Source of the DNA: Pseudomonas aeruginosa PAO1
GTDB lineage: Bacteria > Pseudomonadota > Gammaproteobacteria > Pseudomonadales > Pseudomonadaceae
NCBI RefSeq assembly: GCF_000006765.1
Contig: NC_002516.2
DNA length: 64,000 bases
Strand: one strand, 5' to 3'
Each line of letters opens with the position of its first letter. The stretch's first letter is position 1. Position numbers and translations under genes: made by a program. Shown in pieces: positions 4,415 through 53,548 of the stretch. The notes below the pieces were generated by a model, which was not told where the DNA came from, did no database searches, and saw only the letters and a list, made by a program, of their open reading frames with translations.

Positions 4415-4846
4415 ATGCACATTCGCAAGCGCGTCGACGCCGACAACACGGCATTGGTCGACCTGTGGGAACGTTCCGTCCGCGCGACCCACGACTTTCT
4501 CAGTGAAGCGGACATCGTCGAGCTTTACCCACAGGTCCGCGACCTGTACCTGCCGGCCGTCGAGGTCTGGGTGCTGGTCGACGACGACGGCGTGGCCCAG
4601 GGCTTCATCGGCCTGAACCAGGCGCATGTCGAGATGCTCTTCGTCGAACCCGGGCTGCGCGGCCGGGGTATCGGCCGACGCCTGCTCGATCATGCGCGGG
4701 CGACCTGGCCGCGCCTGAGCGTCGATGTCAACGAGCAGAACCCGCAGGCCTGCGGCTTCTATCGACACTATGGGTTCCGCCAGACCGGCCGCTCCGCGAC
4801 CGACTCGGCGGGGCGGCCGTTCCCGCTGCTGCACATGAGCCTGTAG
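4415..4846 (+). CDS. GNAT acetyltransferase (YjaB-like)
   Basis: Motif A LFVEPGLRGRGIGRRLL and VDVNEQNPQACGFY. Confidence 0.9.
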   Translation: MHIRKRVDADNTALVDLWERSVRATHDFLSEADIVELYPQVRDLYLPAVEVWVLVDDDGVAQGFIGLNQAHVEMLFVEPGLRGRGIGRRLLDHARATWPRLSVDVNEQNPQACGFYRHYGFRQTGRSATDSAGRPFPLLHMSL

Positions 4847-4851
4847 GAGGA

Positions 4852-4885
4852 CGCGGCACCTCGCCCTGTGGAGCGAGGTGCCGCG
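4852..4885. terminator. Perfect 13 bp GC-rich hairpin just after the GNAT gene
   Basis: CGCGGCACCTCGC-CCTGTGGA-GCGAGGTGCCGCG. It has no U-tract, so it may be a REP-like or stabilising element rather than an intrinsic terminator. Confidence 0.5.
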
Positions 4886-4938
4886 CAACATCCGGAAAAG
4901 TTTTCCCCGGCCAGATGCTTTCAACTGCAAGCATCCGT

Positions 4939-4952
4939 TTGAGACAGGTCAA
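4939..4952 (+). promoter_or_regulatory. ANR/FNR-type box upstream of the P-type ATPase
   Basis: TTGAG-ACAG-GTCAA versus consensus TTGAT-N4-ATCAA. A -10-like GATAGT at 4975-4980 has class II spacing. Confidence 0.7.
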
Positions 4953-5011
4953 ACGTTGCGGCGCAGGCCTGCCCGATAGTTCTGTTCATCAGAACGAGGC
5001 GCAGGAATCCC

Positions 5012-7720
5012 ATGAACGGCATCCCACCCCTGTCTTCCCGCGACGCCCATGCCAGCCCGCCGCAACGGGTGCTGGAACGATTGCACAGCTCCGCCGCCGG
5101 TCTGGACGCGGACGAAGCCGCCCGCCGCCTGGCGGCGCACGGCTACAACCGATTGCCCGCGCCGAAACGCCAGGGGCCGCTGCTGCGCTTGCTGCGGCAG
5201 TTCCACAACGTCCTGCTGTACATGATGCTGTTCGCCTCGCTGGTCACCGCGCTGCTCGGCTTCTGGGTGGACAGTGCGGTAATCCTCCTGGCGGTGGTGG
5301 TCAACGCGCTGATCGGTTTCGTCCAGGAGGGCAAGGCGGCCAACGCGCTGGACGCCATCCGCGACATGCTTTCGCTGCATGCCCTGGTCCTGCGCGACGG
5401 CCAGCGCCAGGCGCTGGACGCCGAACGCCTGGTACCGGGCGACGTGGTGCTGCTGGCCTCCGGCGACCGGGTGCCGGCCGACCTGCGGCTGTTCGAAACG
5501 AAGAACTTCCATGTCGACGAGTCGGCCCTGACCGGCGAGTCGGTGCCGGTGGAGAAGGGCTGCGTCGCGGTGGCCATCGACGCGCTGCTCGGCGACCGCC
5601 GTTGCATGGCCTATTCCGGCACCCTGGTGACCAGCGGCCAGGCGCGCGGAGTGGTGGTCGCCACCGCCGGGGATACCGAACTGGGCCGGATCGGTACGCT
5701 GTTGCGCGAAGTCCGCACCCTGGCCACTCCGCTGCTGCGACAGATCGCCAGCTTCAGTCGCTGGCTGGCCCTGGCGATCCTGCTGCTGGCCGGCGCCACT
5801 TTCGTCCTCGGCACCCTCTGGCAGGGCCAGCCGATGGTGGACATGTTCATGCTGGTGGTGGCGCTGACCGCCTCGGCGATTCCCGAGGGACTGCCGGCGA
5901 TCATGACGGTGATCCTCGCCCTCGGCGTACAGCGCATGGCCCGGCGCAACGCCATCGTCAGCCGCCTGCCGGCGGTGGAGACGCTGGGTTCGGTGACGGT
6001 GATCTGCTCGGACAAGACCGGCACCCTGACCCGCAACGAGATGACCGTGCAGCGTATCGTCACCGCCGACCAGGTAATCGAGGTCAGCGGCGCCGGTTAC
6101 GCCCCCCTGGGTGGTTTCAGCCACAACGGCGAAGGCCTCGATCCCGCCGGACGCGACGATCTGCAGGAGATCGGTCGCGCGGCGCTGTTGTGCAACGAGG
6201 CGCGCCTGCACCAGGAGGGCGAGGCATGGCAACTGGAGGGCGACCCCACCGAAGGCGCGCTGCTCAGCCTCGGCCTCAAGCTGGGCCTCGATCCGCAGGC
6301 GCTGGCGGCGGAACGGCCACGCAGCGATGCGATTCCGTTCGAGTCCGAGCATCGCTTCATGGCCACCCTGCACCACGACCACGCAGGCCAGGCGATGGTC
6401 TACCTGAAGGGCGCGCCGGAGCGCATCCTCGACATGTGCGAGGCTGAACGGGTGGGCGACTCGGTGCGGCCGCTGGACCCGGACTACTGGCGGCGCCTGG
6501 CCACCGACACCGCCGCTCGCGGTCTGCGCCTGCTGGCCATCGCCCGACGGGCGATGCCGGCGGAGCAGCGCACGCTGGATTTCGCCGACGTGGAACATGG
6601 CTTCACCCTGCTGGCCCTGGTGGGCATCATCGACCCTCCGCGCGAGGAAGCCGTGGCCGCGGTCGCCGAATGCCAGGCGGCGGGTATCGCGGTGAAGATG
6701 ATCACCGGCGACCACGTCGACACCGCGCGGGCGATCGGCGCCATGCTCGGGATCGGCATCGACCGGCCGGCGCTGACCGGCGCGGAGATCGAGTTGCTCG
6801 ACGACCAGCGCCTGCGCGAAGTGCTGCCGGGCGTCGATGTGTTCGCCCGCGCCAGCCCTGAGCACAAGCTGCGCCTGGTGCAGGCCCTGCAGGCCAGCGG
6901 CGAGGTGGTGGCGATGACCGGCGACGGGGTCAACGATGCGCCGGCGCTGAAGCGCGCCGACGTCGGCGTAGCGATGGGCAACAAGGGCACCGAGGCGGCC
7001 AAGGAGGCGGCTGAGGTGGTCCTCGCCGACGACAATTTCGCCACCATCGCCAATGCCGTGCGCGAGGGAAGGGCAGTCTACGACAACCTGAAGAAATTCA
7101 TCCTCTTCATGCTGCCGACCAACGGTGGCGAGGCGCTGATCGTGATCGCCGCGATCCTGTTCCAGTTGACCCTGCCGATGACGCCGGCGCAGATCCTCTG
7201 GATCAACATGGTCACCTCCAGCACCCTGGGCCTGGCGCTGGCCTTCGATCCGGCCGAGCGCGGCCTGATGCAGCGTCCGCCGCGTCCGCCGGCGGAGCCC
7301 CTGTTGTCGCTGTTCTTCGTCTGGCGGGTGCTGCTGGTCTCGCTGCTGATGATGGCGGGCGCCCTGGGCCTGTTCCTCTGGGAGCTGGAGCATGGCACCG
7401 GGCTGGAGAGCGCGCGGACCATGGCGGTGAACAGCGTGGTGGTGTGCGAGATGTTCTACCTGCTCAACAGCCGGCATATCTACGATTCGGTGCTCAGCCG
7501 CGAGGGCCTGTTCGGCAACCGCCAGGTCTTGCTGGCGATCGCCGCCTGCGTGATGCTGCAACTGCTCTATACCTATGCGCCGCCGTTGCAGGCGCTGTTC
7601 GGCTCGGTCGGCCTGGCCCCGGGCGAGTGGGCGCGGGTGCTGCTGGCCGGGCTCGGCCTGTTCTGCGTCGCCGAACTGGAAAAGTGGCTATGTCGCCGGG
7701 TCCGTGCCCGGCAGGCCTGA
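5012..7720 (+). CDS. Cation-transporting P-type ATPase (P2, Ca2+-ATPase-like)
   Basis: TGES actuator motif, IPEGLP, phosphorylation motif CSDKTGTLT, KGAPE, MITGD and TGDGVNDAPAL. Confidence 0.95.
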   Translation: MNGIPPLSSRDAHASPPQRVLERLHSSAAGLDADEAARRLAAHGYNRLPAPKRQGPLLRLLRQFHNVLLYMMLFASLVTALLGFWVDSAVILLAVVVNALIGFVQEGKAANALDAIRDMLSLHALVLRDGQRQALDAERLVPGDVVLLASGDRVPADLRLFETKNFHVDESALTGESVPVEKGCVAVAIDALLGDRRCMAYSGTLVTSGQARGVVVATAGDTELGRIGTLLREVRTLATPLLRQIASFSRWLALAILLLAGATFVLGTLWQGQPMVDMFMLVVALTASAIPEGLPAIMTVILALGVQRMARRNAIVSRLPAVETLGSVTVICSDKTGTLTRNEMTVQRIVTADQVIEVSGAGYAPLGGFSHNGEGLDPAGRDDLQEIGRAALLCNEARLHQEGEAWQLEGDPTEGALLSLGLKLGLDPQALAAERPRSDAIPFESEHRFMATLHHDHAGQAMVYLKGAPERILDMCEAERVGDSVRPLDPDYWRRLATDTAARGLRLLAIARRAMPAEQRTLDFADVEHGFTLLALVGIIDPPREEAVAAVAECQAAGIAVKMITGDHVDTARAIGAMLGIGIDRPALTGAEIELLDDQRLREVLPGVDVFARASPEHKLRLVQALQASGEVVAMTGDGVNDAPALKRADVGVAMGNKGTEAAKEAAEVVLADDNFATIANAVREGRAVYDNLKKFILFMLPTNGGEALIVIAAILFQLTLPMTPAQILWINMVTSSTLGLALAFDPAERGLMQRPPRPPAEPLLSLFFVWRVLLVSLLMMAGALGLFLWELEHGTGLESARTMAVNSVVVCEMFYLLNSRHIYDSVLSREGLFGNRQVLLAIAACVMLQLLYTYAPPLQALFGSVGLAPGEWARVLLAGLGLFCVAELEKWLCRRVRARQA

Positions 7721-20495: not shown

Positions 20496-21779
20496 ATGGC
20501 CGTCGCCCCTGGTGTGTTGTTGCCGCCGACGCCTGATGTAAAGCCCAAGGCCGCTGCGCCGAAGAGCCAGCAGAAAACGCCTGAGCCCAGTAACGACAAG
20601 ACTTCCAGCTTCTCCGACATGTATGCCAAGGAGACCGCGAAGAAGCCCGCCGAGCGCGCCGACGGTCCCGCGAAGGGTTCGCGGGACAAGCCACGGGACG
20701 CCGGCAAGGACGCCGCCGAAGCGCAGCCGACGGATGCCGTCAGGCAGCCGGCCGTTGCCGAAGACGGCAAGCCTTTGCCGGCCGACGGCCAGGCCAAGGC
20801 CGACGGCGAAGATAAAGTCGAAACGCCGGTCGATCCGCTGCAATTGCTCGGCCTCGGCGGTGCCGTACCGTTGCTCGACGAGAATACCCAGGCGACTTTG
20901 CTGCCACCGGCCGTGCCGACGGCCAGCAGTGCTCCGGCCAGCCTTACCGAAGCCAGCAGCGACCCGACCCTGGTCAAGCTCAACGGCGTGCCGGCGGTGA
21001 ACATGGCCCTGGAGCAGGGCGCCCAGGACGCCGCGCAGACGGCGAAAGGCGGGCCGGCGAAGAGCGCCGATCCCCGCCAGGCGAACCTCGGCGATGCCCT
21101 TGCCGGCCTGACCTCGGATTCCTTGACCAAGGCCGTCGACGGCAAGGCGCTCGAGGCCCAGTTGCAGCAGACCGCCGAGCCGGCCGTCGCCAGCGCCGCC
21201 TCCGAGAGCCTGCTGGAGAGCAAGGCGGAACCCCGCGGTGAACCTTTCGCGGCCAAGCTCAACGGGCTGACCCAGGCCATGGCGCAACAGGCCCTGACCA
21301 ACCGTCCGGTGAACGGCACGGTGCCCGGCCAGCCGGTGGCGATGCAGCAGAACGGCTGGAGCGAGGCGGTGGTGGACCGGGTGATGTGGATGTCCAGCCA
21401 GAACCTGAAGTCGGCGGAGATCCAGCTCGACCCCGCCGAGCTGGGACGCCTGGACGTGCGCATCCACATGACCGCCGACCAGACCCAGGTGACCTTCGCC
21501 AGTCCCAACGCCGGCGTTCGCGACGCCCTGGAAAGCCAGATGCACCGGCTGCGCGACATGTTCAGCCAGCAGGGCATGAACCAGCTCGACGTGAACGTCT
21601 CCGACCAGTCGCTGGCGCGGGGCTGGCAGGGCCAGCAGCAGGGCGAGGGCGGATCGGCGCGCGGACGCGGCTTGGCCGGCGAGGCCTCGGGCGATGAGGA
21701 AACCCTCGCCGGAGTCAGCGAGATCCGCAGCCGGCCGGGTGCGTCGGCGGCGCGCGGTCTGGTCGACTACTACGCCTGA
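20496..21779 (+). CDS. fliK: Flagellar hook-length control protein FliK
   Basis: Disordered Ala/Pro-rich N-terminal part and a C-terminal FliK domain (AEIQLDPAELGRLDVRI...LESQMHRLRDMF). Confidence 0.9.
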   Translation: MAVAPGVLLPPTPDVKPKAAAPKSQQKTPEPSNDKTSSFSDMYAKETAKKPAERADGPAKGSRDKPRDAGKDAAEAQPTDAVRQPAVAEDGKPLPADGQAKADGEDKVETPVDPLQLLGLGGAVPLLDENTQATLLPPAVPTASSAPASLTEASSDPTLVKLNGVPAVNMALEQGAQDAAQTAKGGPAKSADPRQANLGDALAGLTSDSLTKAVDGKALEAQLQQTAEPAVASAASESLLESKAEPRGEPFAAKLNGLTQAMAQQALTNRPVNGTVPGQPVAMQQNGWSEAVVDRVMWMSSQNLKSAEIQLDPAELGRLDVRIHMTADQTQVTFASPNAGVRDALESQMHRLRDMFSQQGMNQLDVNVSDQSLARGWQGQQQGEGGSARGRGLAGEASGDEETLAGVSEIRSRPGASAARGLVDYYA

Positions 21780-26337: not shown

Positions 26338-27474
26338 ATGGCCGAGAGCGAGAGCGGGCAGGACAAGACAGAGGAACCCACGGAGAAACGCCGCCGCGAG
26401 GCGCGCGAGAAAGGGCAGTTGCCGCGTTCGCGGGAGCTGAACACCCTGGCCATCCTCATGGCCGGCGCCGGCGGCCTGCTGATCTACGGCGCCGACCTGG
26501 CGGGCGCCCTGTTGCGCCTGATGCGCAGCAATTTCGAGCTGTCCCGGGAAACCGCGATGAATACCGAGAGCATGCTGCAATTGCTCGGCGCTTCGGCCTA
26601 CCTGGCTGCCCAGGGGCTCTGGCCGATCCTGCTGATGCTGCTGGTGGCGGCGATCGTCGGGCCGATCGCCCTCGGCGGCTGGCTGTTCTCGATGGACGCC
26701 CTGCAACCCAAGTTCAGCCGGCTCAACCCGCTGTCGGGGCTGAAGCGGATGTTTTCCGCCAAGTCGCTGCTCGAACTGAGCAAGGCGCTGATCAAGTTCC
26801 TGGTGGTGCTGGCGGTGGCCCTGCTGGTGCTCTCCGCCGACCGCGACGCCCTCCTGGCGCTGGCGCACCAGCCGCTCGAGCAGGCGATCCTGCACAGCGT
26901 GCGGGTGGTCGGCTGGAGCGCCTTCTGGATGGCCTGCAGCCTGCTGCTGATCGCCGCGGTGGACGTGCCCTACCAGATCTGGGACAACCGCCAGAAGCTG
27001 CTGATGACCAAGCAGGAAGTCCGCGACGAATACAAGGACTCCGAGGGCAAGCCCGAGGTCAAGTCGAAGATCCGCCAGATGCAGCGCGAGATGGCGCAGA
27101 GACGGATGATGGCGGCGGTGCCGGAGGCCGACGTGGTGATCACCAACCCGACCCACTTCGCCGTAGCCCTGAAGTACGACCCGGCGGGCGGCGGGGCGCC
27201 GCTGCTGCTGGCCAAGGGCAACGATTTCCTGGCCCTGAAGATCCGCGAGGTGGCCCAGGAGCACAAGGTGATGGTCATGGAGTCGCCGGCGCTGGCGCGA
27301 GCGGTGTACTACTCCACCGAGCTGGATCAGGAGATTCCCGCCGGGCTCTATCTCGCCGTGGCCCAGGTGCTGGCCTATGTCTACCAGCTCAAGCAGTACC
27401 AGGCCGGCAAGGGCAAGCGGCCGAGCCCGTTGAAGGACCTGCCGATCCCGCCGGACCTGCGTCGCGACGAGTGA
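26338..27474 (+). CDS. flhB: Export substrate-specificity switch FlhB
   Basis: KTEEPTEKR N-terminus, four TM segments and the NPTH autocleavage motif. Confidence 0.98.
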   Translation: MAESESGQDKTEEPTEKRRREAREKGQLPRSRELNTLAILMAGAGGLLIYGADLAGALLRLMRSNFELSRETAMNTESMLQLLGASAYLAAQGLWPILLMLLVAAIVGPIALGGWLFSMDALQPKFSRLNPLSGLKRMFSAKSLLELSKALIKFLVVLAVALLVLSADRDALLALAHQPLEQAILHSVRVVGWSAFWMACSLLLIAAVDVPYQIWDNRQKLLMTKQEVRDEYKDSEGKPEVKSKIRQMQREMAQRRMMAAVPEADVVITNPTHFAVALKYDPAGGGAPLLLAKGNDFLALKIREVAQEHKVMVMESPALARAVYYSTELDQEIPAGLYLAVAQVLAYVYQLKQYQAGKGKRPSPLKDLPIPPDLRRDE

Positions 27475-36832: not shown

Positions 36833-36859
36833 TCAAGACTGCGGCATCGCTGCCGTTAA
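36833..36859 (+). promoter_or_regulatory. Sigma28 (FliA) promoter upstream of cheA
   Basis: TCAAG-N14-GCCGTTAA versus consensus TAAAG/TCAAG-N14-GCCGATAA. Confidence 0.75.
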
Positions 36860-43091: not shown

Positions 43092-43119
43092 TCAAGCCGC
43101 ACCGGAGTGCGGCCGATAA
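43092..43119 (+). promoter_or_regulatory. Sigma28 promoter upstream of the parP-like gene and cheW
   Basis: TCAAG-N15-GCCGATAA with a perfect -10 octamer. Confidence 0.8.
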
Positions 43120-44086: not shown

Positions 44087-44566
44087 ATGAGCAAAGCCAC
44101 CGCGCAAAGCGCCGAAGATCCGATCCTGCAGTGGGTCACCTTCCGCCTGGACAACGAGAGCTACGGCATCAATGTGATGCAGGTCCAGGAGGTGCTGCGC
44201 TACACCGAGATCGCCCCGGTGCCGGGCGCGCCGAGCTACGTGCTGGGCATCATCAACCTGCGCGGCAACGTGGTCACGGTGATCGACACCCGCCAGCGCT
44301 TCGGCCTGGACCCTGCGCCGGTCAGCGACAACACGCGGATCGTCATTATCGAGGCGGACAAGCAGGTGGTCGGCATCCTGGTCGACAGCGTCGCCGAGGT
44401 GGTCTACCTGAAGCAGTCGGAAATCGAGACCGCGCCGAACGTCGGCAACGAAGAGTCGGCCAAGTTCATCCAGGGTGTCTGCAACAAGAACGGCGAGCTG
44501 CTGATCCTGGTCGAGCTGGACAAGATGATGACCGAGGAAGAATGGTCGGAGCTGGGCAGCATCTGA
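44087..44566 (+). CDS. cheW: Chemotaxis coupling protein CheW
   Basis: YGINVMQVQEV and VLGIINLRGNVVTVID. Confidence 0.97.
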   Translation: MSKATAQSAEDPILQWVTFRLDNESYGINVMQVQEVLRYTEIAPVPGAPSYVLGIINLRGNVVTVIDTRQRFGLDPAPVSDNTRIVIIEADKQVVGILVDSVAEVVYLKQSEIETAPNVGNEESAKFIQGVCNKNGELLILVELDKMMTEEEWSELGSI

Positions 44567-44596
44567 TGCGTTCTACCGACACGAGGGCCTGCTGAG

Positions 44597-45004
44597 ATGG
44601 AGGTCGTCGCGCTGGCACTGGCGCTCGCCGCCTGCCTCGGCCTGGCGGCGGCGTGCCTGTGGCTGCGCCGTGAATTGCGCCGCCTGCAAGCTGCGCTGGC
44701 GCAGCAGGCGGAGGAGGGCGCCGCGCGCGAGCGCCGGCTCAAGGAGCTGAGCAAGCGCATCGAGTCCTACCAGCAGGTCAACGTGCGCATGGGCGAGGCC
44801 TTGCAGGACCTCGGCAAGCAACTCGCGCCGCTTCCCGACCGGGTCGCGCGCCTGGAGCAGCGCGATCCGACCACGCTGTCGTTCAGCCAGGCCGCACGCC
44901 TGGTCGGGCTCGGCGCCAGCGCCGAAGACCTGACCCAGGCCTGCGGTCTGTCGCAGGCCGAGGCCGAGCTGGTGGCGCGCCTGCACGAAGCCAAGGGCAA
45001 GTGA
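44597..45004 (+). CDS. DUF2802-like protein (TM, coiled coil, C-terminal HTH-like segment)
   Basis: AARLVGLGASAEDLTQACGLSQAEAELVARL, in the typical position after cheW. Confidence 0.8.
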   Translation: MEVVALALALAACLGLAAACLWLRRELRRLQAALAQQAEEGAARERRLKELSKRIESYQQVNVRMGEALQDLGKQLAPLPDRVARLEQRDPTTLSFSQAARLVGLGASAEDLTQACGLSQAEAELVARLHEAKGK

Positions 45005-45031
45005 CGGTCGCCGGCCCGGCGCTGGCGCTTT

Positions 45032-45718
45032 TCAGGCGAGCAGGCGGCTCGCCACTTCTGCCAGTGTCACCTCTCCCCTGAACTCCCCGCAGCTCTGCGC
45101 CGGCAGGCGATCCTCGATGGCATGGGCGAAGCGCACCGCCGGGTCCTGCTCCAGCTTCTCCAGGTGTCGATGCAGGCGCGGAAAGTCGTGTTGCAGGTCG
45201 AAGTAGCCCAGCTCCCGTCCCCAGCGAGCGGTACCCGCGAGGTAGGCGTCGGCCACGCTCGGCCCTTCGCCGGCCAGCCACTTGCGGTCGCCGAGCAGCT
45301 TGTCGATCCGGCCATAGGCTCGCGCCGCGCGCGTCAGCGCCCTTGCCGTCGTGGTTGCGTCGGCGTCCTCCAGATAGAACAGGGCTCCCCAGGCCGAATG
45401 GCATTCGGTATGCAGGAGGGCGAGGGCGAAGTTCAGTTCGTCGAACTCGGCGCTGCCCTGCGGATAACCGAGCTTCCTGCACAGGTCGCGCGCCGCCAGG
45501 TGCTGGAGAATGGCCAGGCTTTCGCTGAGCGCGCGGCCGTCCTCCAGGAGCAGGGTGGGCGTCTGGCGAGCCGGGTTCAGGCGCACGTAGGTGCGCTCGC
45601 CGGTATCCAGCGGCATCTCGATCCGACACAGGCGATAGGGGCGGCCGAGCCACTCGAGGGCCACGATCGAGCCGAAGGAACAGCCGTGGGGTACGCCATA
45701 AAACAGTACAGGTTCCAT
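45032..45718 (-). CDS. Glutathione S-transferase
   Basis: FYGVPHGCS, RLNPARQTPTL, LSESLAILQHL and GPSVADAYL. Confidence 0.92.
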   Translation of the reverse strand: MEPVLFYGVPHGCSFGSIVALEWLGRPYRLCRIEMPLDTGERTYVRLNPARQTPTLLLEDGRALSESLAILQHLAARDLCRKLGYPQGSAEFDELNFALALLHTECHSAWGALFYLEDADATTTARALTRAARAYGRIDKLLGDRKWLAGEGPSVADAYLAGTARWGRELGYFDLQHDFPRLHRHLEKLEQDPAVRFAHAIEDRLPAQSCGEFRGEVTLAEVASRLLA

Positions 45719-45826
45719 TTTCCATCTCCGTTCAGGTAACGCACGTTGCGCATCGCAACCGGGCTGAACGCAGGGTAGGGGGGATATAGGCTATATTCGG
45801 TCCTGATTTTTCCGGTGGATCGAAAA

Positions 45827-46798
45827 ATGTCCAAGCCCACGGTGCGCGTGCTCGCCCTGCTCGAACTGCTGCAGAGCCACGGCCAGCTCAGCGGTAGCGA
45901 GCTGGCCAGGCGCCTGGAGGTGGATGGACGGACGCTGCGTCGCTATATCGTCGCCCTCGAGGAGCTGGGCATACCCATCTCGGCGGAGCGCGGACGCCAT
46001 GGCGGTTACCGCCTGGTGGCCGGTTTCAAGCTCCCGCCGCTGATGTTCAGCGCGGAGGAAACCCTGGCCGTGTCCCTCGGCCTGCTGGCGGTGCGCAGTC
46101 TCGGCCTGGGCGAAAGCGAGCTGGCCCTGGAAAGTGCGCAGGCCAAGCTGAGCAGGGTGATGCCCGTTGCGCTGCGGCGGCGCCTCGTGGCGCTCCGCGA
46201 GACCGCCAGCCTGGACCTGGCCCGCGCCCGGGCGGGAACCAGTGTGGCGGCGCTGGCGACCCTCGCCGAAGCCGCCCAGGTCCGTGCGCGGGTCGAGTTC
46301 CGCTATCGCGACCCGCAGGGCGCCGAAACCCTCCGCCAACTCGATCCCTACGGCCTGGCCTATCGCAACGGCTGCTGGTACGTCAGCGGTTTCTGCCACC
46401 TGCGCCAGGCGTTGCGCTCGTTCCGTCTCGATCGCCTGGACGCGCCGCGCATGCTGGCGGAGCGCTTCGAGCGACCGGCGGATTTCGATACCCTCCGCCA
46501 CCTGCGGGAGAGCTTCGCCCGGATGCCGCGCGCCTACCCGGTGGAAATCCTGATGCGGGCGGCGAGGGAGCAGGTGGTCGCGGTGCTCGGCGAGCCCCTC
46601 GGTCTGCTCGCCGAGGTCGATGGCGGTACGCTGTTGCGCGCCAGCACCGACGACCTGGACTGGTTCGCCCGGCGCCTGTGCGGCCTGCCGTTCGACTTCG
46701 AGGTCAGGCAGCCGCTGGAGTTGCGCGAGCCGTTGAGGCGCCAGGCCGAGCGTGTCCTGCGTAACCTGGGCCAGGAGGAAGCTTCGGATCACAGGTAG
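45827..46798 (+). CDS. YafY/PafC-type wHTH-WYL transcriptional regulator
   Basis: HTH (ELARRLEVDGRTLRRYIVAL...GGYRL) and WYL domain (LDPYGL...WYVSGFCHLRQALRSFRLDRL). Confidence 0.92.
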   Translation: MSKPTVRVLALLELLQSHGQLSGSELARRLEVDGRTLRRYIVALEELGIPISAERGRHGGYRLVAGFKLPPLMFSAEETLAVSLGLLAVRSLGLGESELALESAQAKLSRVMPVALRRRLVALRETASLDLARARAGTSVAALATLAEAAQVRARVEFRYRDPQGAETLRQLDPYGLAYRNGCWYVSGFCHLRQALRSFRLDRLDAPRMLAERFERPADFDTLRHLRESFARMPRAYPVEILMRAAREQVVAVLGEPLGLLAEVDGGTLLRASTDDLDWFARRLCGLPFDFEVRQPLELREPLRRQAERVLRNLGQEEASDHR

Positions 46799-46888
46799 GC
46801 ATTTAGAGGAAAAGTCCTATTAATTGCGCGGCTGCCGCTTTCTAGAATCGGTCCTGGTCAACCCGCACGTTTCCAGGAGGCCACAAGG

Positions 46889-47305
46889 ATGCCTGCAATA
46901 CCCCTGCGCGCCATGGTGCTGTGCGCCAACCCCGGCCGTCTGCTCAGGTATGGAGCGCTGTTCAACCGCTGCGGCTACTTCCACTTGAGCCTGTGCCTGG
47001 ACCGACGGGAGCTGCGGCGCTCCCTGGACCAGGGTTACCCGTACGACTATTGCCTCTACGACGGATTCCGCCTGGACCAGGGCTGCAAGGGCACGCTGGC
47101 GATGCTGGGACGCAGCGGCAGCATCCGGCGCTTCCTGCTGGTGGGCGAACTCGATTGCCGCGAGAAGCGCCTGTTGTTCGAGTGGAGCAGAGGCCATGGC
47201 CTGAGCATCGGCGCGGTGTCCGACCGGCCTTTGGGCCAGGTCGCCCTGGCCGCGTTGATCAAGCGTGATCGCGGCTGCCCCGACCTCCTGCGCGGCATCG
47301 CCTGA
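46889..47305 (+). CDS. Hypothetical protein, probable stand-alone atypical receiver (REC-like) domain
   Basis: The secondary-structure pattern read by eye matches REC: RAMVLC, YDYCLYD, FLLVGE and VSDRP. AGGAGG RBS. Confidence 0.65.
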   Translation: MPAIPLRAMVLCANPGRLLRYGALFNRCGYFHLSLCLDRRELRRSLDQGYPYDYCLYDGFRLDQGCKGTLAMLGRSGSIRRFLLVGELDCREKRLLFEWSRGHGLSIGAVSDRPLGQVALAALIKRDRGCPDLLRGIA

Positions 47306-47349
47306 GGCGGCTTCCGGGAAGATGAGGTAAGGTCGTTTTCCAACCTTCC

Positions 47350-48087
47350 ATGGCGAGACAGCGCATGACCGTCCAGGCCGACATCCTCAAGGCGATCGAA
47401 GGCATCGAGCATGGCTTCCAGCAAGCCGGCCAGGCACTCTCCGAGCGGATATTCCATTGCCGGCAGGTGCATGGCGCCGAGATCGTCGACGCGCGCTCGT
47501 TGTCGGAATCGGGACGGCATGCCGCCGACGGCGTTTTCAGCGAAGGGCCGCTGGCGGTCGCGGTGGTCACCGCGGACTGCCTGCCGATTCTCATGAGCAG
47601 TCGCGACGGTCGGGTGGTGGCCGCCCTGCATGGCGGCTGGCAGGGGCTCGTCGCCGGTATCGTCGGCGCGGCGGTGGCGCGCTTCAATGCGCGCGGCGTC
47701 GCCAGCGCGGACATCCGGGTCGCCATCGGTCCCGGGATCAAAGCCTGCTGCTACGAGGTGAGTGCCGGGTTCATCGAGGCGTTGCAGGTCGGCCACGGCC
47801 GCCTCTGGGAAGGCGCGGCGCCTCCCTGGAGCCAGCGTCGTCCGCTCCCCGAGCGGCCGCCCCGGTTCGCTCCGCCCGAGCCAAGGCAGGCGGAGCAGGG
47901 CGCCTGGCTGGACCTGGTGGCCTTCTGTCGCCAGTTGTTCCAGGCCGCCGGCGTCGGGCCGGCGCAGATCGAAGCCAGCGCCGTCTGCACCTACTGTTCC
48001 GGCGATGCGTTCGCCAGTCATCGCCGACGCCAGCGCCTGGGCGAGGAGAAGCGTCAGCAGTACGCCTGGATCGCGCGCAAGCCGTGA
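47350..48087 (+). CDS. YfiH/PgeF-like (laccase-domain) protein
   Basis: QVHG, VTADCLPIL, HGGWQG, IGPGIKACCYEV and CTYC...FASHRR. The start may be 47365. Confidence 0.85.
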   Translation: MARQRMTVQADILKAIEGIEHGFQQAGQALSERIFHCRQVHGAEIVDARSLSESGRHAADGVFSEGPLAVAVVTADCLPILMSSRDGRVVAALHGGWQGLVAGIVGAAVARFNARGVASADIRVAIGPGIKACCYEVSAGFIEALQVGHGRLWEGAAPPWSQRRPLPERPPRFAPPEPRQAEQGAWLDLVAFCRQLFQAAGVGPAQIEASAVCTYCSGDAFASHRRRQRLGEEKRQQYAWIARKP

Positions 48088-48220
48088 CCGCGTATCGGTA
48101 TTGTCCGGAAATCCTGGATAGTCATGACGGTTGTCTGCTGTTTATCCGCCAATAGCCGGCTTCTAGACTTTTCTTGTCGATGCGTGGCTGTCGCCACGCT
48201 CATTCCAGGAGAGTCCCAGC

Positions 48221-48958
48221 ATGCCTGACATCACCCAAGCCGCCATCGTCACCGGCGCCTCCCGCGGCATCGGTCGCGCCATTGCCCGGCGGCTGGCCGC
48301 CGACGGTTTCGCGGTCGCGGTCAACTATGCCAGCAACCAGGCCATGGCCGACGAGGTCGTGGCCGAAATCGTCGCCGCCGGCGGCGCGGCCATCGCCGTG
48401 CAGGGCGACGTGGCCAGCGCGGAGGACATGGACAAGCTGTTCGAAGCCACCAGGGGCGCCTTCGGCCGCATCGACGTGGTGGTCAACAGCGCCGGCACGA
48501 TGCCCTATCTGAAGATCGCCGATGGCGACCTGGAGGGCTTCGACCGGGTGATCCGCACCAACCTGCGCGGCGCCTTCATCGTGCTCGGCCTGGCTGCCCG
48601 GCATGTCGAGCGCGGCGGACGGATCATCGCCCTGTCCACCAGCGTGATCGCCCGGGCGCTGCCCAGCTACGGTCCGTACATCGCGTCCAAGTCCGGGGTC
48701 GAGGGGCTGGTGCACGTGCTGGCCAACGAGTTGCGCGGCCAGGACATCAGGGTCAACGCGGTGGCGCCCGGCCCGGTGGCCACCGAGCTGTTCTTCAACG
48801 GCAAGAGCGCCGAACAGATCGACCAGATCGCCAGGCTGGCGCCGCTGGAGCGTCTCGGCGAGCCGGACGAGATCGCCGCGGCGGTGTCCTTCCTCGCCGG
48901 GCCGGACGGGGCCTGGGTCAATTCCCAGGTGCTGCGGGTCAACGGCGGTTTCGCCTGA
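48221..48958 (+). CDS. Short-chain dehydrogenase/reductase
   Basis: TGASRGIG, NSAG, catalytic YIASK and VAPGP. Confidence 0.95.
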   Translation: MPDITQAAIVTGASRGIGRAIARRLAADGFAVAVNYASNQAMADEVVAEIVAAGGAAIAVQGDVASAEDMDKLFEATRGAFGRIDVVVNSAGTMPYLKIADGDLEGFDRVIRTNLRGAFIVLGLAARHVERGGRIIALSTSVIARALPSYGPYIASKSGVEGLVHVLANELRGQDIRVNAVAPGPVATELFFNGKSAEQIDQIARLAPLERLGEPDEIAAAVSFLAGPDGAWVNSQVLRVNGGFA

Positions 48959-48973
48959 GCCGTGTGGGCGGGG

Positions 48974-49009
48974 CACGAAAAAGCCGGCGCGAAGGCCGGC
49001 TTTTTCGTG
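48974..49009. terminator. Bidirectional intrinsic terminator
   Basis: CACGAAAAAGCCGGC-GCGAAG-GCCGGCTTTTTCGTG, a perfect 15 bp inverted repeat with U-tracts on both strands, between convergent genes. Confidence 0.92.
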
Positions 49010-49023
49010 GTCGCCACTGGCGG

Positions 49024-49320
49024 TCAGCGGTCGTTCTTGGTCGAGGAGCCGATGGCGTTGCTCAAGCCCTTGCTGTTGTGATCGCCGGGGGTGGTGGCGG
49101 AGATCGCGCTGGCCTGCGACAGCCCGCGGCTGTCGCGGGAGCTGGCGATGCCGGAGGTGGCTGAACCATGGCCTTTGCTGGAGTGGCCGCCGAGGTTGCC
49201 GCCGCCATTTCCGCCCTTGGCATAGGCGGAGCCGACAGGAGAAAGCTCGCCAGGCAGCAGGGTGCTGCCCGCGAACAGCAGGCCGAGAGCAGCTACGGCG
49301 AACAGGGTATGTTTTTTCAT
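49024..49320 (-). CDS. Small secreted Gly/Ser-rich protein
   Basis: Signal-like MKKHTLFAVAALGLLF...SAYA followed by a low-complexity mature region. GGAGG lies upstream. Confidence 0.75.
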   Translation of the reverse strand: MKKHTLFAVAALGLLFAGSTLLPGELSPVGSAYAKGGNGGGNLGGHSSKGHGSATSGIASSRDSRGLSQASAISATTPGDHNSKGLSNAIGSSTKNDR

Positions 49321-49357
49321 TTGAGGGATGCCTCCGCAGGCATGTGGTGTGCCGTCT

Positions 49358-49384
49358 AAAGACCGTTGCGCGAACGACAGGTTC
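49358..49384 (-). promoter_or_regulatory. AlgU (sigmaE)-like promoter for the small secreted protein
   Basis: Minus strand reads GAACCT-N16-TCTTT versus AlgU consensus GAACTT-N16/17-TCtga. Confidence 0.55.
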
Positions 49385-49427
49385 TGTGGAAAGCGACGGA
49401 TGGCGGGCCCTGCCGGTGGTTCCTCCT

Positions 49428-49982
49428 TCAGCGGTTGCGCCAGTGCTCGGCGAGCAATCCGTAGAGCGCCGAGTCGGAGACTTCTCCGGAAACGATCCAG
49501 CGTTGTGCGAGCAGGCCCTCCTGGCGGAAGCCCAGGCGCTCCAGGCTGGCGGCCGAAGGCCGGTTGCGCGGATCGATCTCCGCCTCCAGGCGGTTCAGGT
49601 CGATTTCATCGAAAGCGAACGCCAGCAGCCTGCGCAGCGCCTCGCCCATGTAACCCCGGCCCTGGGCTGCACGTGCCAGGCAGTAGCCGAGTTCGGCGCG
49701 GCGCGAGCCTTTCTCGAAATGGAAGAGGATACAACTGCCGAGCAATTGGCCGTCTTCTCGACGCTCGATGGCCAGGTTCAGGTATTCGCCGTCGACGAGC
49801 GCCTGGCTGTCCCGCAGGATCGCCTCGCGGGCCTGCGCAGGGGTCGTCCACGGCGGTGTGTTCCAGTAACGCATGACTTCCGGGTCGGACATCATGGCGA
49901 ACAGCGGCGCGGCGTCTTCCTCTCGGAAAGTGCGTAGCCGCAGGCGCGGGGTGTCCAACGGGTGGGGAAAGACGAAGTTCAT
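49428..49982 (-). CDS. GNAT N-acetyltransferase, RimJ/RimL family
   Basis: LDTPRLRLR, AELGYCLARAAQGRGYMGEA and NRPSAASLERLGF. Confidence 0.92.
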   Translation of the reverse strand: MNFVFPHPLDTPRLRLRTFREEDAAPLFAMMSDPEVMRYWNTPPWTTPAQAREAILRDSQALVDGEYLNLAIERREDGQLLGSCILFHFEKGSRRAELGYCLARAAQGRGYMGEALRRLLAFAFDEIDLNRLEAEIDPRNRPSAASLERLGFRQEGLLAQRWIVSGEVSDSALYGLLAEHWRNR

Positions 49983-50082
49983 CGGGCGCTCCTTTGCCGA
50001 GGTCGGAGGCTGCGCAGCTTAGCGCGCAGCGGCGAGGTCCTGGAGCTGATGTGCGTGCGGATGTTTCGCCGTGCGGGCTGGC

Positions 50083-50418
50083 TCAGTCGCCGGGACCGCC
50101 GAGTAGCAGCATCTGGTTGCCATCCGCGGCGTCCGGCGCGAATCCCTCGGGACACTTGCCTTTCAGGTGCCAGGCGAAGGCGATGATCTCAGCGATGGTG
50201 CGATACAGCGCTTCCGGAATGGCGTCGCCGAGTTCCAGGCGGGCGAGCAGGCGGACCAGCTCGGCGTTCTCGTAGATCGGTACCTCGTAGTCGCGGGCGA
50301 TGGCCAGGATCGCCTCGGCCAGTTCGGCGTCGCCCTTGGCGGAAAGGGTCGGCGCGGCCTGGCCGTCGTAGCTCAGGGCGATGGCCTGGCGCGGGGCGGG
50401 TGACTGCTTTCTGTTCAT
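50083..50418 (-). CDS. Stand-alone FlhB C-terminal-fragment-like protein (EscU/FlhB family)
   Basis: AIALSYD...AP...AKG...LA..I...A....V...E...L...L......IPE.LY...A.I.A aligns by eye with FlhB residues after NPTH. No TM segments. Confidence 0.88.
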   Translation of the reverse strand: MNRKQSPAPRQAIALSYDGQAAPTLSAKGDAELAEAILAIARDYEVPIYENAELVRLLARLELGDAIPEALYRTIAEIIAFAWHLKGKCPEGFAPDAADGNQMLLLGGPGD

Positions 50419-51995
50419 GCGGTTTCGTCTACCCAGCGTTGTTCGATGGTCGCTCGCGGGCCCTGGGGCGGGCGGCCGCGTTGGCAGGTGATCTCGCCAA
50501 CGGTCAGGCCGGCGTCGCGCAGGCGTTGGCGCAGGTGGCCGAGTTCATGCTCGACCAGCCGCGCGGTCGCGTCTCGCTCGGCCCAAAGCTGGCTGGACAG
50601 GCTGCCGCGTAGCAGGGTCGCCTGGGCGTGCAGCGGTCCCAGCGGCTCCAGGTCGAAGGCCAGTTCGACGCGCCAGAGGCTTTCGCGGGCCTCTTCGCCG
50701 GTCTTGCGCTGTTCTTCCTGGAACTTCACCTGCAACGGTACCACCGAGTGCTGATGGCGCATGGGCACCTCCATCTGCCAGGTCGCCAGTTGGGTGCCAT
50801 CCGGCAGGGTGCTGGTCTGCGCCAGGCTCGACAACTGATGGGTCTGCAGGCGGGAGATCGCCGCGGCGGCAAGGCGCAGCAGCGACTCCAGTTCCATGTC
50901 CTCGTCGAACAGTTGGAGAACCTTGCTCGGCAGGGGAAAGTTCAGTGCCTGGGTCTTGTTGGCGCTCTGTCCCAGGTTGCCCAGGGCGTTGCGGACAAAG
51001 GCCGGCAGCGCCTGGGCCAGGTTCGCCGTGTTGCCGGCGAACATGCCCGGCGCCTGGGCGCCGGTCGGCGGCAGCGGCGACAGCTGGGCGAACAGGCGCA
51101 ACAGGTTGGCCTTCAGGTCATGGCCGAGATGATCGGTGGCGCCCTGCATCAGGCGCGCCTCGAGGAACAGGCCGCTCTGCTGCAGGGCCTGGCCGAGCAG
51201 CTTGGAATCGCCCATCTTCTGCGCCTCCGGCAGGCCGGCGAAGAGGCGCTCCACGGCCTGGCGCAGGCTGTCCGGCAGGTCGTTGCGGCCGTTCAGCCCC
51301 TGCAGGGCGGCGAACAGGCCTTCCAGGGAAGCCTGGCGGGCGCTCTGCCCGGCCAGTTGCTGGCCCAGCGCAAGCTGGTCGAGGCGTCCGCTGAGTGGCA
51401 GGAAGTCGATCTGCTGGCTGTTTTTAACCAGCGCCGTGAGCAGGCTGCCGACTGGCAGCGCCTGGGGCGAGTCGAGGCTCAGCTTGCTGCCGGCGAGCGG
51501 CGTGTTGAGCAGGTTCAGCAGGACCCGGTAGACCACCTGCTGGGCCTTGTCCGCCGGCAGCGCGGTGCTGGACAGGACCTTGCCCTGGAGCAGGGTGCCG
51601 GGCGGCAGTTGCTCCAGGTCGAGGCTGCTCAGCGGGCCAGCGCCGGCCATGCTGTCGAGCAGGGTTGCAACCACGCTGGTGTTGCTGGTGGCGCTGACGT
51701 TAAGCAGGTTGCCCGGCACCAGCGGCCGATTGCTCTGCACTTCCACCAGGCTCTGCCCGCTGTTCGCCAGGGTCAGCTTGAGCAGGACCTGGAAATTGTT
51801 CGCCAGGCCTTCCTTGACCGCCAGCACCTCGGCCTTGCCCGACTCGCCTTCGCCCAGCAGGCCGGCCAGGGTCTGCACCAGCTTCAGGGTCATCTCGGCG
51901 TCGGCCTGGGCGTTGCCCTGCGATTGCGCCGGCGGCAGCGGGCGTGGGGCGGAGACCGGGGGTAGTGGCGGGGAAGCGCCTATCTCGGCTGGCAT
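50415..51995 (-). CDS. FliK-like protein with a C-terminal hook-length control domain
   Basis: C-terminal WRVELAFDLEPLGPLHAQA...LWAE...LRQRLRDAGL resembles the FliK C-domain. ATG at 51995, or TTG at 52004. Confidence 0.75.
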   Translation of the reverse strand: MPAEIGASPPLPPVSAPRPLPPAQSQGNAQADAEMTLKLVQTLAGLLGEGESGKAEVLAVKEGLANNFQVLLKLTLANSGQSLVEVQSNRPLVPGNLLNVSATSNTSVVATLLDSMAGAGPLSSLDLEQLPPGTLLQGKVLSSTALPADKAQQVVYRVLLNLLNTPLAGSKLSLDSPQALPVGSLLTALVKNSQQIDFLPLSGRLDQLALGQQLAGQSARQASLEGLFAALQGLNGRNDLPDSLRQAVERLFAGLPEAQKMGDSKLLGQALQQSGLFLEARLMQGATDHLGHDLKANLLRLFAQLSPLPPTGAQAPGMFAGNTANLAQALPAFVRNALGNLGQSANKTQALNFPLPSKVLQLFDEDMELESLLRLAAAAISRLQTHQLSSLAQTSTLPDGTQLATWQMEVPMRHQHSVVPLQVKFQEEQRKTGEEARESLWRVELAFDLEPLGPLHAQATLLRGSLSSQLWAERDATARLVEHELGHLRQRLRDAGLTVGEITCQRGRPPQGPRATIEQRWVDETA

Positions 51996-52089
51996 GGGTA
52001 ACAACCTGTCTTAAACGACCCTGCGGAGGCTGGGGAAGGGCGTGTATAATGCCGCGCCTGTCAAACAGGCTGGCCGCGTCGTCACCAGT

Positions 52090-52116
52090 ATAGCGGCCGT
52101 GTTTATCCCGACTTTA
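52090..52116 (-). promoter_or_regulatory. Sigma28-type promoter for the FliK-like/FlhB-like pair
   Basis: Minus strand reads TAAAG-N14-GCCGCTAT (consensus TAAAG-N14-GCCGATAA), about 95 nt upstream of the ATG. Confidence 0.65.
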
Positions 52117-52178
52117 GGGTCTGTTCCGTGAAGGCCTCCGGCGCCGCGACGAGGAGAGACGCTTGGCGATGTTGTTCG

Positions 52179-52880
52179 ATGTCCGATCCTGCTGAAGTCC
52201 CCACAGCCAGCCCCTTGCTGGAAACCGTCGGGCTCGCCTGCGAGCGCGACTGGCGCATGCTGTTCGAGCGCCTCGACCTGCGCCTGGCCGCCGGCGAGAT
52301 GTTGCAGGTGGTGGGTCCCAACGGCAGCGGCAAGACCAGCCTGCTGCGCCTGCTGTCCGGACTGATGCAGCCGACCGCCGGGGAAGTCCGCCTGAACGGC
52401 CGGCCGCTCGCCGAACAGCGCGGCGAACTGGCCCGCAGCCTGTTGTGGATCGGCCACGCCGCGGGAATCAAGGGCCTGCTCAGCGCCGAGGAGAACCTCA
52501 CCTGGCTCTGCGCGCTGCACCAGCCGGCCAGCCGCGAGGCGATCTGGCAGGCCCTGGCCGACGTCGGCCTGCGTGGCTTCGAGGACGTTCCCTGTCACAC
52601 CCTTTCCGCCGGCCAGCAACGCCGCGTGGCGCTGGCCCGCCTGTACCTGGACGCACCGCCCTTGTGGATCCTCGATGAACCCTTCACCGCCCTCGACAAA
52701 CAGGGGGTGGCGCAACTGGAAACGCACCTGGCCGGGCATTGCCAGCGCGGCGGGATGGTGGTGCTGACCACCCACCACAGCCTGCAGCAGGTGCCCGCCG
52801 GCTACCGCGAGCTGGACCTTGGTGCGCTCAAGGCGGCCAGCGGCGCGACGGTCGAGCCGGCGCTGGGCGACCCGGCATGA
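52179..52880 (+). CDS. ccmA: Heme exporter ATPase CcmA
   Basis: [26 protein letters not shown] and WILDEPFT. Confidence 0.96.
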
Positions 52881-53548
52881 GCAACGTCTTCAGCCTGCTC
52901 CTGGCGCGCGAGGCGCGCCTGCTGTTCCGCCGACCGGCGGAGCTGGCCAATCCGCTGGTGTTCTTCGCCATCGTCATCGCCCTGTTCCCCCTGGCGGTCG
53001 GGCCGGAGAGCCAATTGCTACAAACCTTGTCGCCCGGCCTGGTCTGGGTGGCGGCGCTATTGGCCGTGCTGCTCTCGCTGGAAGGGCTGTTCCGCAGCGA
53101 TTTCGAGGACGGTTCTATGGAGCAGTGGGTCCTTTCGCCGCACCCCCTGGCTCTTCTGGTGCTGGCCAAGGTGCTGGCACACTGGCTGTTTTCCGGGCTG
53201 GCCCTGGTCCTGATGTCGCCGCTGTTCGCGCTGATGCTGGGCCTGCCGGCCCGTTGCATACCGGTGCTGCTGCTTTCCCTGTTGCTCGGTACGCCGGTGC
53301 TGAGCCTGCTCGGCGCCGTCGGCGCGGCCTTGACCGTGGGCCTCAAGCGCGGCGGCCTGTTGCTGGCGCTGCTGATCCTGCCGCTGTACATCCCGGTGCT
53401 GATTCTCGGTAGCGGGGCGCTGCAGGCTTCGCTGCAGGGACTGCCTAGCAGCGGACATTTATTGTGGCTGGCGAGCCTGACGGCGCTAGCATTGACACTC
53501 ACGCCATTCGCCATCGCTGCCGGCCTGAAGATCAGCGTAGGCGAGTGA
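52877..53548 (+). CDS. ccmB: Heme exporter permease CcmB
   Basis: [14 protein letters not shown] and [12 protein letters not shown]. Confidence 0.96.

Follow-up and report, generated by a model that had tools for sequence, protein, structure and literature searches.

A fliK2-flhX gene pair of Pseudomonas aeruginosa joins a FliK-type switch domain to a stand-alone FlhB C-domain homologue under a putative sigma-28 promoter

Why would a cell that already encodes FliK and FlhB make a second version of the two domains through which these proteins meet? In flagellar export, the C-terminal domain of FliK (FliK-C) binds that of FlhB (FlhB-C), flipping export specificity (PMC6972891). For Salmonella, it is reported that FlhB-CCD actively keeps the export gate in the early mode until FliK ejects it (Chevance et al. 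2026, PMC13344023), its loss falling at hook-basal-body completion and coinciding with sigma-28 activation (PMC13344023). The question is raised by two neighbouring genes in a 64,000-nucleotide stretch of Pseudomonas aeruginosa PAO1 (contig NC_002516.2; the whole stretch is called the window here), namely fliK2, whose product ends in a FliK-type type III secretion substrate-specificity-switch (T3S4) domain, and flhX, which encodes a stand-alone homologue of FlhB-CC, the C-terminal chain left by FlhB autocleavage. We cautiously favour the reading that this pair would act on the FlhB switch of the export gate, with FlhX as an exchangeable FlhB-CC and FliK2 as its dedicated T3S4 partner. That such a pair exists will not surprise a specialist.

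The pair itself is already known. One P. aeruginosa paper lists PA1474 as hypothetical, a control protein for flagellar hook length whose gene diverges from the heme exporter operon, and because this matches the arrangement seen here, with ccmA beginning at about 52128 and divergent from fliK2, the identity of the window pair with the P. aeruginosa fliK2-flhX operon, PA1474-PA1473, is strongly supported. The P. putida orthologues PP_4328/PP_4329 have been named fliK2/flhX (Leal-Morales et al., bioRxiv 10.1101/2021.08.29.457346), and the same preprint describes the flagellar segment of P. aeruginosa as running 'from fliK2 to fliK'. A first-pass annotation of the window, made from the sequence alone, had proposed the locus as an under-described system; undescribed it is not, as the pair is named and classed as FliA-dependent in P. 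putida. What we add are the adjacency of the two genes in 87/87 loci, the overlap counts, a promoter footprint in 79/80 loci and the conservation of a D-x-x-A tail in FliK2, all given below. Several literature matches were set aside: at least some of those for 'PA1473' are spurious and come from PA14_73xxx locus tags, the 'fliK2/flhB2' of a Vibrio alginolyticus paper belong to another flagellar system, complete in itself, and a Rhodobacter paper, as far as its accessible part goes, likewise deals with a second flagellar gene set.

Considering the smaller protein first, FlhX matches only columns 262-334 of the 335 columns of Pfam Bac_export_2 (the last 73; E=4e-16), and aligns with residues 275-352 of the canonical FlhB of the window at 38% identity, directly after ...ITNPTHF. 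The NPTH of this FlhB is present, and NPTHFAVALKYD is visible in its alignment with FlhX, which carries APRQ at residues 8-11 in place of NPTH. Among 86 FlhX sequences, NPTH, NPEH or NPSH was found in none, and lengths of 90-165 aa (amino acids) across loci leave no room for the four transmembrane helices of FlhB. The best matches in the PDB are 3B1S_B and 3B0Z_B, both of them C-terminal chains left by FlhB autocleavage. Thus, the first-pass claims that the protein is homologous to FlhB only downstream of the NPTH cleavage site, and that it has neither this motif nor a membrane domain, were confirmed, including the sequence strings quoted for them. The best NCBIfam family is TIGR00789 (flhB_rel, 'FlhB-like flagellar biosynthesis protein'; E=2e-20), with 72.7 bits against a curated cutoff of 117.35 that belongs to this one model and is not a literature definition of FlhX, and the name given by the Prokaryotic Genome Annotation Pipeline (PGAP) is 'EscU/YscU/HrcU family ... 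switch protein'. FlhX shares 99% identity with a P. aeruginosa protein and 85-88% with its relatives in the P. putida group.

Among the residues that FlhX has kept are the counterparts of those with which FlhB-CC docks early substrates. In Salmonella FlhB, early substrates dock in a pocket formed by A286, P287, A341 and L344, and the residues tolerated at the three mutagenised positions are A/V/S, A/V/S/G/I and L/I/V (PMC9307174). By the alignment of the PDB hits, the corresponding residues of FlhX are A22, P23, A76 and I79, which are conserved in 79, 87, 87 and 85 of 87 FlhX sequences, respectively. The residues of the post-cleavage strand (A12, A14, L15, Y17, D18 and G19) are also nearly invariant among these sequences. 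The prediction that FlhX retains both the post-cleavage strand of FlhB-CC and the four-residue hydrophobic pocket docking early (rod/hook) substrates is therefore strongly supported by conservation.

FliK2 ends in a match to Pfam Flg_hook (PF02120, the FliK C-domain) with E=1e-18 and 67.2 bits, against a cutoff of 29.8. Foldseek superposes this T3S4 domain on the switch domain of PscP (5CUK; probability 1.00, root-mean-square deviation 2.5 A over 67 columns) and on FliK-C (2RRL; probability 1.00), so that the FliK-like C-domain proposed in the first pass is borne out by both profile and fold. BLASTP detects no similarity between FliK2 and the canonical FliK of the window, and it takes the Pfam profile and the fold to reveal the relationship; sequence searches of the PDB with FliK2 and with its family profile returned nothing meaningful, and no NCBIfam model covers the protein. 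The AlphaFold2 model, built from a 44-sequence alignment, has a mean predicted local distance difference test score (pLDDT) of 82.3, and in its T3S4 domain the block values are mostly 93-97, with one 10-residue block at 78.

The C-terminal end is the second element in which FliK2 resembles FliK. The last five residues of Salmonella FliK have been proposed to engage and destabilise FlhB-CCD and are needed to act on it (PMC13344023), and the VDETA with which FliK2 ends resembles the VDYYA end of the canonical FliK of the window. A terminal D-x-x-[AVTI] is found in 81/86 locus-encoded FliK2 proteins and in 37/44 representatives. The tail that carries it is about 11-12 residues long in FliK2, versus 55 in the window FliK.

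The rest of the protein looks different. What defines canonical FliK is a disordered ruler that carries an export signal, followed by a Pro-rich linker, a core that is folded and a disordered tail of about 50 residues (PMC6972891). The N-terminal two-thirds of the window FliK are Ala/Pro/Gln-rich and of low complexity and include FSDMY at 38-42; the T3S4 domain occupies 294-372, and the tail has 55 residues. As judged from its sequence, this protein fits the description. In FliK2, the model places two small beta-barrel domains and a helical middle region ahead of the T3S4 domain (Table 1). In Foldseek, the barrel region weakly resembles two known barrels, those of ModG Mop and ribosomal S28e, and relatives of FliK2 have weak Pfam matches to S1-like and DUF7513. 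The helical region, which has no Pfam, NCBIfam or PDB sequence match, carries the family-specific motifs SGxFLE, DLKAxLLRL and ALARxQxHQL, and G275, E279, K295, R382 and Q387 are invariant in the 44-sequence alignment. The first ~70 residues of FliK2 contain no Phe and no gate-recognition motif, where the window FliK has its FSDMY. Because FliK2 is mostly folded in the model and lacks an N-terminal Phe or gate-recognition motif, we do not class it as a FliK ruler, and from the lack of this motif we infer that it is cytoplasmic. Hence, the earlier label 'FliK-like' holds for the T3S4 domain and the C-terminal tail and fails for the remainder, which is predicted to be folded rather than a disordered secreted ruler; that FliK2 is mostly folded and has in common with FliK only this domain and a short, similar tail is strongly supported.

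The two genes follow each other on the minus strand, and direct reading of the sequence shows the ATGA by which, as the first pass had noted, the stop codon of fliK2 overlaps the start codon of flhX. This arrangement is conserved. We compared 87 loci, made up of the best 80 Pseudomonadaceae loci from a single genome-contig scan with the FlhX alignment and seven non-Pseudomonas gammaproteobacterial contigs, including those of Thiogranum longum and Legionella dresdenensis. A FliK2-family open reading frame (ORF) lies directly upstream of flhX on the same strand in 87/87 of them, and the genes overlap in 75/86 scored pairs (66 by ATGA and 9 by 1 nt). In 7/7 non-Pseudomonas loci, the gene next after the FliK2-like one encodes a Bac_export_2 protein of 90-101 aa, with a 4-nt overlap in 6/7. 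Translational coupling of fliK2 and flhX, as predicted from the ATGA overlap, is thus strongly supported. An in-frame TTG at 52004 provides an alternative start for fliK2, which would yield 529 aa (ORF 50415-52004, minus strand).

Both families are large. In a search of 1.84 billion representative proteins, FliK2 had relatives in 3020 clusters, of which 1424 lie at E<1e-10, and the matches listed are mostly from metagenomic gammaproteobacteria; the region common to the relatives spans residues ~207-526 and far exceeds the 85-residue Pfam domain. Small FlhB-CC proteins account for more than 5000 representative clusters in the profile search. On this comparative evidence, the origin of the pair lies well before that of Pseudomonas. 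A separate CC copy, predicted to be expressed late and coupled in every locus compared to a non-ruler T3S4 protein, is found in many gammaproteobacteria, among them species of Pseudomonas and Legionella. Because the best 80 loci of the single genome scan are all from Pseudomonadaceae, the reach of the pair beyond Gammaproteobacteria rests on hints in the literature, where a 'flhX-fliK' pair is mentioned in Nitratiruptor and FlhX has served as a query or scored component in surveys of Actinobacteria and Campylobacterota.

Expression of the pair appears to be tied to the late class of flagellar genes. A sigma-28 (FliA)-type element, TAAAG-N14-GCCGCTAT, sits about 95 nt before the fliK2 ATG, and this strict pattern has one match in the 64 kb, versus 0.01 expected. 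The motif T[CA]AAG-N14-GCCG[CTA]TA[TCA] is present at the equivalent position in 79/80 Pseudomonadaceae loci, and because it is kept while the spacer sequence varies, we regard the element as a phylogenetic footprint rather than a chance match. The Legionella dresdenensis locus (L002) has a perfect TCAAG-N14-GCCGATAA at the equivalent position. A relaxed scan gives many matches, mostly within coding sequence; three are intergenic and near the consensus, and each of them, at 36833, at 43092 and at the fliK2 site, lies ahead of a flagellar or chemotaxis ORF. Between 49300 and 52300, a promoter scan found no sigma-70-type promoter-like site.

The experimental record from P. putida agrees with this picture. 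There, the pair is placed in the FliA-dependent class (bioRxiv 10.1101/2021.08.29.457346; Jimenez-Fernandez et al. 2016, PMC5026340), RNA-seq shows co-transcription of fliK2-flhX, a FliA consensus lies upstream of fliK2 in several species, and ectopic FliA raises seven FliA-consensus promoters, including PfliK2, 4- to 33-fold (all from bioRxiv 10.1101/2021.08.29.457346). The P. putida Ppp4328 promoter is, moreover, FleQ-dependent. The sigma28-type promoter suggested in the first pass is accordingly supported, at the sequence level by its single strict match and its footprint and by the FliA dependence of the P. putida orthologue, and transcription of fliK2-flhX from a sigma-28 (FliA) promoter in P. 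aeruginosa is strongly supported by these comparisons. It would follow that the pair is made only after the hook-basal body is finished.

As for the two other relaxed matches, the first is TCAAG-N14-GCCGTTAA (36833-36859, plus strand) and precedes the ORF at the cheA position, and the second is TCAAG-N15-GCCGATAA (43092-43119, plus strand) and precedes the CheW-domain gene at 43151; the two sites match PcheA and PparC, internal regions known from P. putida.

What might a late T3S4 protein and a late FlhB-CC do together? The window encodes one canonical FliK and one canonical FlhB in addition to the pair, in keeping with the first-pass view of a second such module, and only one flagellar gene set is seen in the 64 kb; the canonical FlhB is the presumed target or partner. 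In the reading that we favour, FliK2 and FlhX would form a stoichiometric pair, mirroring the contact between FliK-C and FlhB-CC. FlhX would serve as a 'spare' FlhB-CC that can take the place on FlhB-CN, as the Helicobacter protein is reported to do, and the dedicated task of FliK2 would be to hold, load or remove it. Together, they may buffer or reset export specificity in cells already bearing a finished flagellum. The roles suggested in the first pass, which were to lock, reset or repair the switch or to titrate FliK, would fit the present data equally well. As FliA is active in a flagellated monotrichous cell during assembly of the next basal body, the pair could act on both nascent and switched gates.

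Three known systems bear on this proposal. The first is FlhX of Helicobacter pylori (HP1575), which, in the part of the literature available, is reported as a 'spare part' substituting for FlhB-CC (Wand et al. 2006; Smith et al. 2009, as cited in bioRxiv 10.1101/2021.08.29.457346). On the same partial record, HP1575 resembles Pseudomonas FlhX in being small, in standing alone and in having homology to FlhB-CC only; the P. putida protein is reported to be 34% identical to it, and the analogy drawn with Helicobacter in the first-pass annotation is one that the literature uses as well (both from bioRxiv 10.1101/2021.08.29.457346). In the accessible portions of this literature, a FliK2-like partner and a sigma-28 operon are documented for Pseudomonas FlhX but not for HP1575, and functional substitution for FlhB-CC is reported only for the Helicobacter protein; for Pseudomonas FlhX, the analysis covered the conservation of the docking pocket.

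The second is the Salmonella FliK/FlhB-CCD switch, which consists of the same two modules, a T3S4 domain with a critical tail and an FlhB C-domain with a hydrophobic pocket (PMC13344023, PMC6972891). The Pseudomonas CC domain is a separate soluble gene product, whereas FlhB-CCD of Salmonella is a cleavage fragment, and FliK2 differs from Salmonella FliK in that its N-terminal domains are predicted to be folded, its tail has 11 residues rather than ~50 and it lacks an N-terminal export motif. The timing differs too, the Pseudomonas pair being predicted to be made late and its Salmonella counterparts early.

The third is the family of injectisome switch proteins, PscP/YscP and HpaC/HpaP, acting on YscU/HrcU. 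The C-domain of FliK2 superposes on the PscP switch domain 5CUK, and relatives of FliK2 have weak Pfam HpaP matches, a likeness to the injectisome T3S4 proteins. HpaC, according to the accessible part of its description (PMC3040844), is a non-ruler T3S4 protein binding an FlhB-family C-domain. Unlike the PscP and HpaC systems, fliK2-flhX has a flagellar context beside che/mot genes and no injectisome genes nearby.

Several observations weigh against action of the pair on the FlhB switch. In Salmonella, loss of FlhB-CCD locks late secretion (PMC13344023), so that re-supplying CC during filament growth looks counter-productive unless tightly controlled. The AlphaFold2 model of FlhX alone is of low confidence (pLDDT 55.6, from a 12-sequence alignment), and its fold is therefore assigned by sequence homology. 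A natural FliK2::FlhX fusion was sought among long FliK2 relatives, and none was found. FliA dependence of the fliK2 promoter has been measured, with reporter fusions, in P. putida only, and no P. aeruginosa data were found in the literature. The P. putida authors themselves call fliK2-flhX 'uncharacterized' (bioRxiv 10.1101/2021.08.29.457346), we found no functional study of the pair after that preprint, and the literature gives no interaction, localisation or phenotype data for FliK2 or FlhX in any Pseudomonas.

An alternative explanation is that the proteins stay away from the gate and work after the switch as a cytoplasmic decoy or sink, the docking pocket of FlhX soaking up the remaining early substrates and canonical FliK while FliK2 captures ejected FlhB-CC, with the result that the switch becomes irreversible and early-type cargo is cleared. 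The conserved early-substrate pocket of FlhX and the late, sigma-28-dependent expression would suit such a role. So would the T3S4 fold and terminal tail of FliK2, since in Salmonella these elements engage FlhB-CCD, and a predicted folded protein without an N-terminal export motif fits with staying in the cytoplasm. However, strict translational coupling and adjacency point to mutual binding rather than to two separate targets, and the reported ability of Helicobacter FlhX, in the part of that literature available, to replace FlhB-CC implies docking at the gate. We regard this explanation as unlikely, if worth keeping in mind.

A bolder version of the favoured reading would make the early-to-late switch, supposed to be irreversible, reversible or renewable in polar flagellates, either through FliK2 loading sigma-28-made FlhX onto, or stripping it from, the FlhB-CN of gates that have ejected their CC, which would re-arm rod/hook export, or through the pair holding nascent gates in the early mode in cells where FliA is already active. 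If true, such re-arming could serve rebuilding after flagellar loss or breakage; we consider it speculative and rather improbable.

Further down in plausibility, and distinctly improbable, we place a role resembling that of Salmonella Flk (Fluke), in which the pair would stabilise or replenish FlhB-CC at the new pole until the hook is complete and thus prevent premature switching. Salmonella holds the early mode with FlhB-CCD and Fluke (PMC13344023), sigma-28 control would place the pair in cells that are already flagellated, the mother cell having active FliA, and the pair is usually found in polar-type flagellar clusters, in the company of genes for a ParA-like ATPase, DUF2802 and motCD-type stators. 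The analogy would be a functional one, to an accessory factor modulating the timing of the FlhB/FlhA switch: Flk is membrane-anchored and acts on FlhA, a sequence relationship to the pair is not expected, and the proposal is purely inferential.

Two further explanations agree poorly with the data. The first, which we judge very unlikely, would make FliK2 another secreted molecular ruler, set to measure a different structure or an alternative hook and served by FlhX as a receptor of its own. The Flg_hook/T3S4 domain and FliK-like tail, together with the public annotation 'flagellar hook-length control protein FliK', speak for it. Yet FliK2 is predicted to be largely folded, with a disordered N-terminus of only ~33 residues and, unlike canonical FliK, no gate-recognition motif there; its expression is predicted to follow hook completion, the window holds a single flagellar gene set, and FlhX, having no membrane anchor, cannot alone be a gate component. 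The second, decay of fliK and flhB duplicates that have no present function, is scarcely credible: no phenotype has been reported, the flhB_rel score lies under its curated cutoff and FliK2 falls outside all NCBIfam models, but the ORFs are intact in 87/87 loci from several gammaproteobacterial orders, promoter, overlap, pocket and tail residues are conserved, and the representative clusters number more than 1400 in the case of FliK2 and exceed 5000 in that of small FlhB-CC proteins.

Action on the FlhB switch, the reading preferred here, gains interest from the Salmonella ejection model (PMC13344023), which makes the function of a late-made free CC domain and its T3S4 partner testable. The fliK2-flhX pair offers a handle on whether the ejected domain can be replaced and how far the switch is one-way, and on the means by which old and new gates are kept in different states when a cell assembles another polar flagellum in every generation. 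Concrete residues and constructs for testing function are at hand in the docking pocket, the C-terminal end of FliK2 and the ATGA junction.

Table 1. Positions, in the window, of the fliK2-flhX pair, its predicted domains and control elements, the canonical genes and the neighbouring genes
Feature	Position	Strand	Description
fliK2 (PA1474) coding sequence with stop	50415-51995	minus	526 aa from ATG 51995; ORF list and Pfam
flhX (PA1473 by position) coding sequence with stop	50083-50418	minus	111 aa; stand-alone FlhB-CC homologue
ATGA overlap, fliK2 stop/flhX start	50415-50418	minus	plus strand reads TCAT
FliK2 residues 1-33			Pro-rich, disordered N-terminus (AlphaFold2)
FliK2 residues 35-199	51399-51893	minus	two predicted small beta-barrel domains, 35-112 and 135-199; block pLDDT 85-96
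FliK2 residues 202-393	50817-51392	minus	predicted helical middle region with two low-confidence loops (AlphaFold2)
FliK2 residues ~402-512	50460-50792	minus	T3S4 (substrate-specificity-switch) domain; alpha/beta domain at 402-506 in the AlphaFold2 model
FliK2 C-terminal pentapeptide VDETA	50418-50432	minus	family motif D-x-x-[AVTI] at the very end
Putative sigma-28 (FliA)-type element TAAAG-N14-GCCGCTAT	52116-52090	minus	TAAAG 52116-52112; 14-nt spacer; GCCGCTAT 52097-52090
Putative fliK2 5' leader	51996-52089	minus	extent inferred from promoter position
Extended -10 TGTATAAT	52033-52040	plus	perfect; faces ccmA; inside fliK2 leader
Canonical flhB	26338-27474	plus	378 aa; full Bac_export_2 columns 1-335, E=1.8e-132; outside fliK2-flhX operon
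Canonical fliK	20496-21779	plus	427 aa; Pfam Flg_hook E=1.7e-24
280-aa ORF	44883-45725	minus	unassigned; in flhX-che gap
HTH-WYL-WCX regulator	45815-46798		in flhX-che gap
Cu-oxidase_4/PgeF-like protein	47350-48087		in flhX-che gap
SDR	48221-48958		in flhX-che gap
98-aa Gly-rich protein	49024-49320	minus	hydrophobic N-terminus; in flhX-che gap
GNAT	49428-49982	minus	in flhX-che gap

The fliK2 leader shares its space with the divergent ccmA side. Divergent ccmAB genes lie upstream of fliK2 in 78/80 Pseudomonadaceae loci, as in the window, and the perfect extended -10 TGTATAAT within the leader probably serves the ccmA operon; its reverse complement, ATTATACA, is kept within the leader in 70/78 Pseudomonadaceae loci. 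With TGTATAAT positioned downstream of the -10 of the fliK2 sigma-28 element, the 5' ends of the divergent transcripts would overlap by ~35 nt, and the two promoters could therefore interfere. According to a P. aeruginosa paper, the PA1474/ccmA intergenic region has a GlpR-associated site. Directly 5' of the fliK2 start codon, a block of the form GACAGG[GT]TGT[AT]A (51998-52014, minus strand) is found by the strict pattern in 40/78 loci and might bind the ribosome or a regulator. The leader also holds a CCTGT-N3-ACAGG palindrome, which was dropped as a conserved element, having been found in 1/79 sequences. A search of 49000-53000 against Rfam returned no RNA family.

On the other side of the pair, P. 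putida and P. aeruginosa are alike in gene order, in the FliA-type promoter motif and in the position of fliK2-flhX at the edge of the flagellar/chemotaxis cluster. They differ in that about 6 kb of unrelated, non-flagellar genes (~44100-50080) part flhX from the chemotaxis genes in the P. aeruginosa window. In 67 other Pseudomonadaceae loci, a CheW-domain gene lies <=4 kb from flhX, and none of these carries the GNAT, SDR or small-protein gene. A scan of the minus strand from 49300 to 52300 gave no terminator-like site in the interval from flhX to the GNAT gene that lies downstream. As possible members of the operon, the GNAT, SDR and small Gly-rich genes were rejected, since no other locus compared carries them.

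Among the non-Pseudomonas loci, a DUF2802 gene and cheW and/or motCD-type genes adjoin the pair in 6/7. The upstream neighbour in 6/7 (L001, L003 and L084-L087) is a gene for a pentapeptide-repeat protein of ~260-330 aa, divergent from fliK2, beyond which lies a Memo-AMMECR1 gene pair, directly adjacent in 5/6. One metagenomic locus (L087) has a response-regulator/GGDEF/EAL gene (4611-6467) inserted between flhX and the DUF2802-cheW genes.

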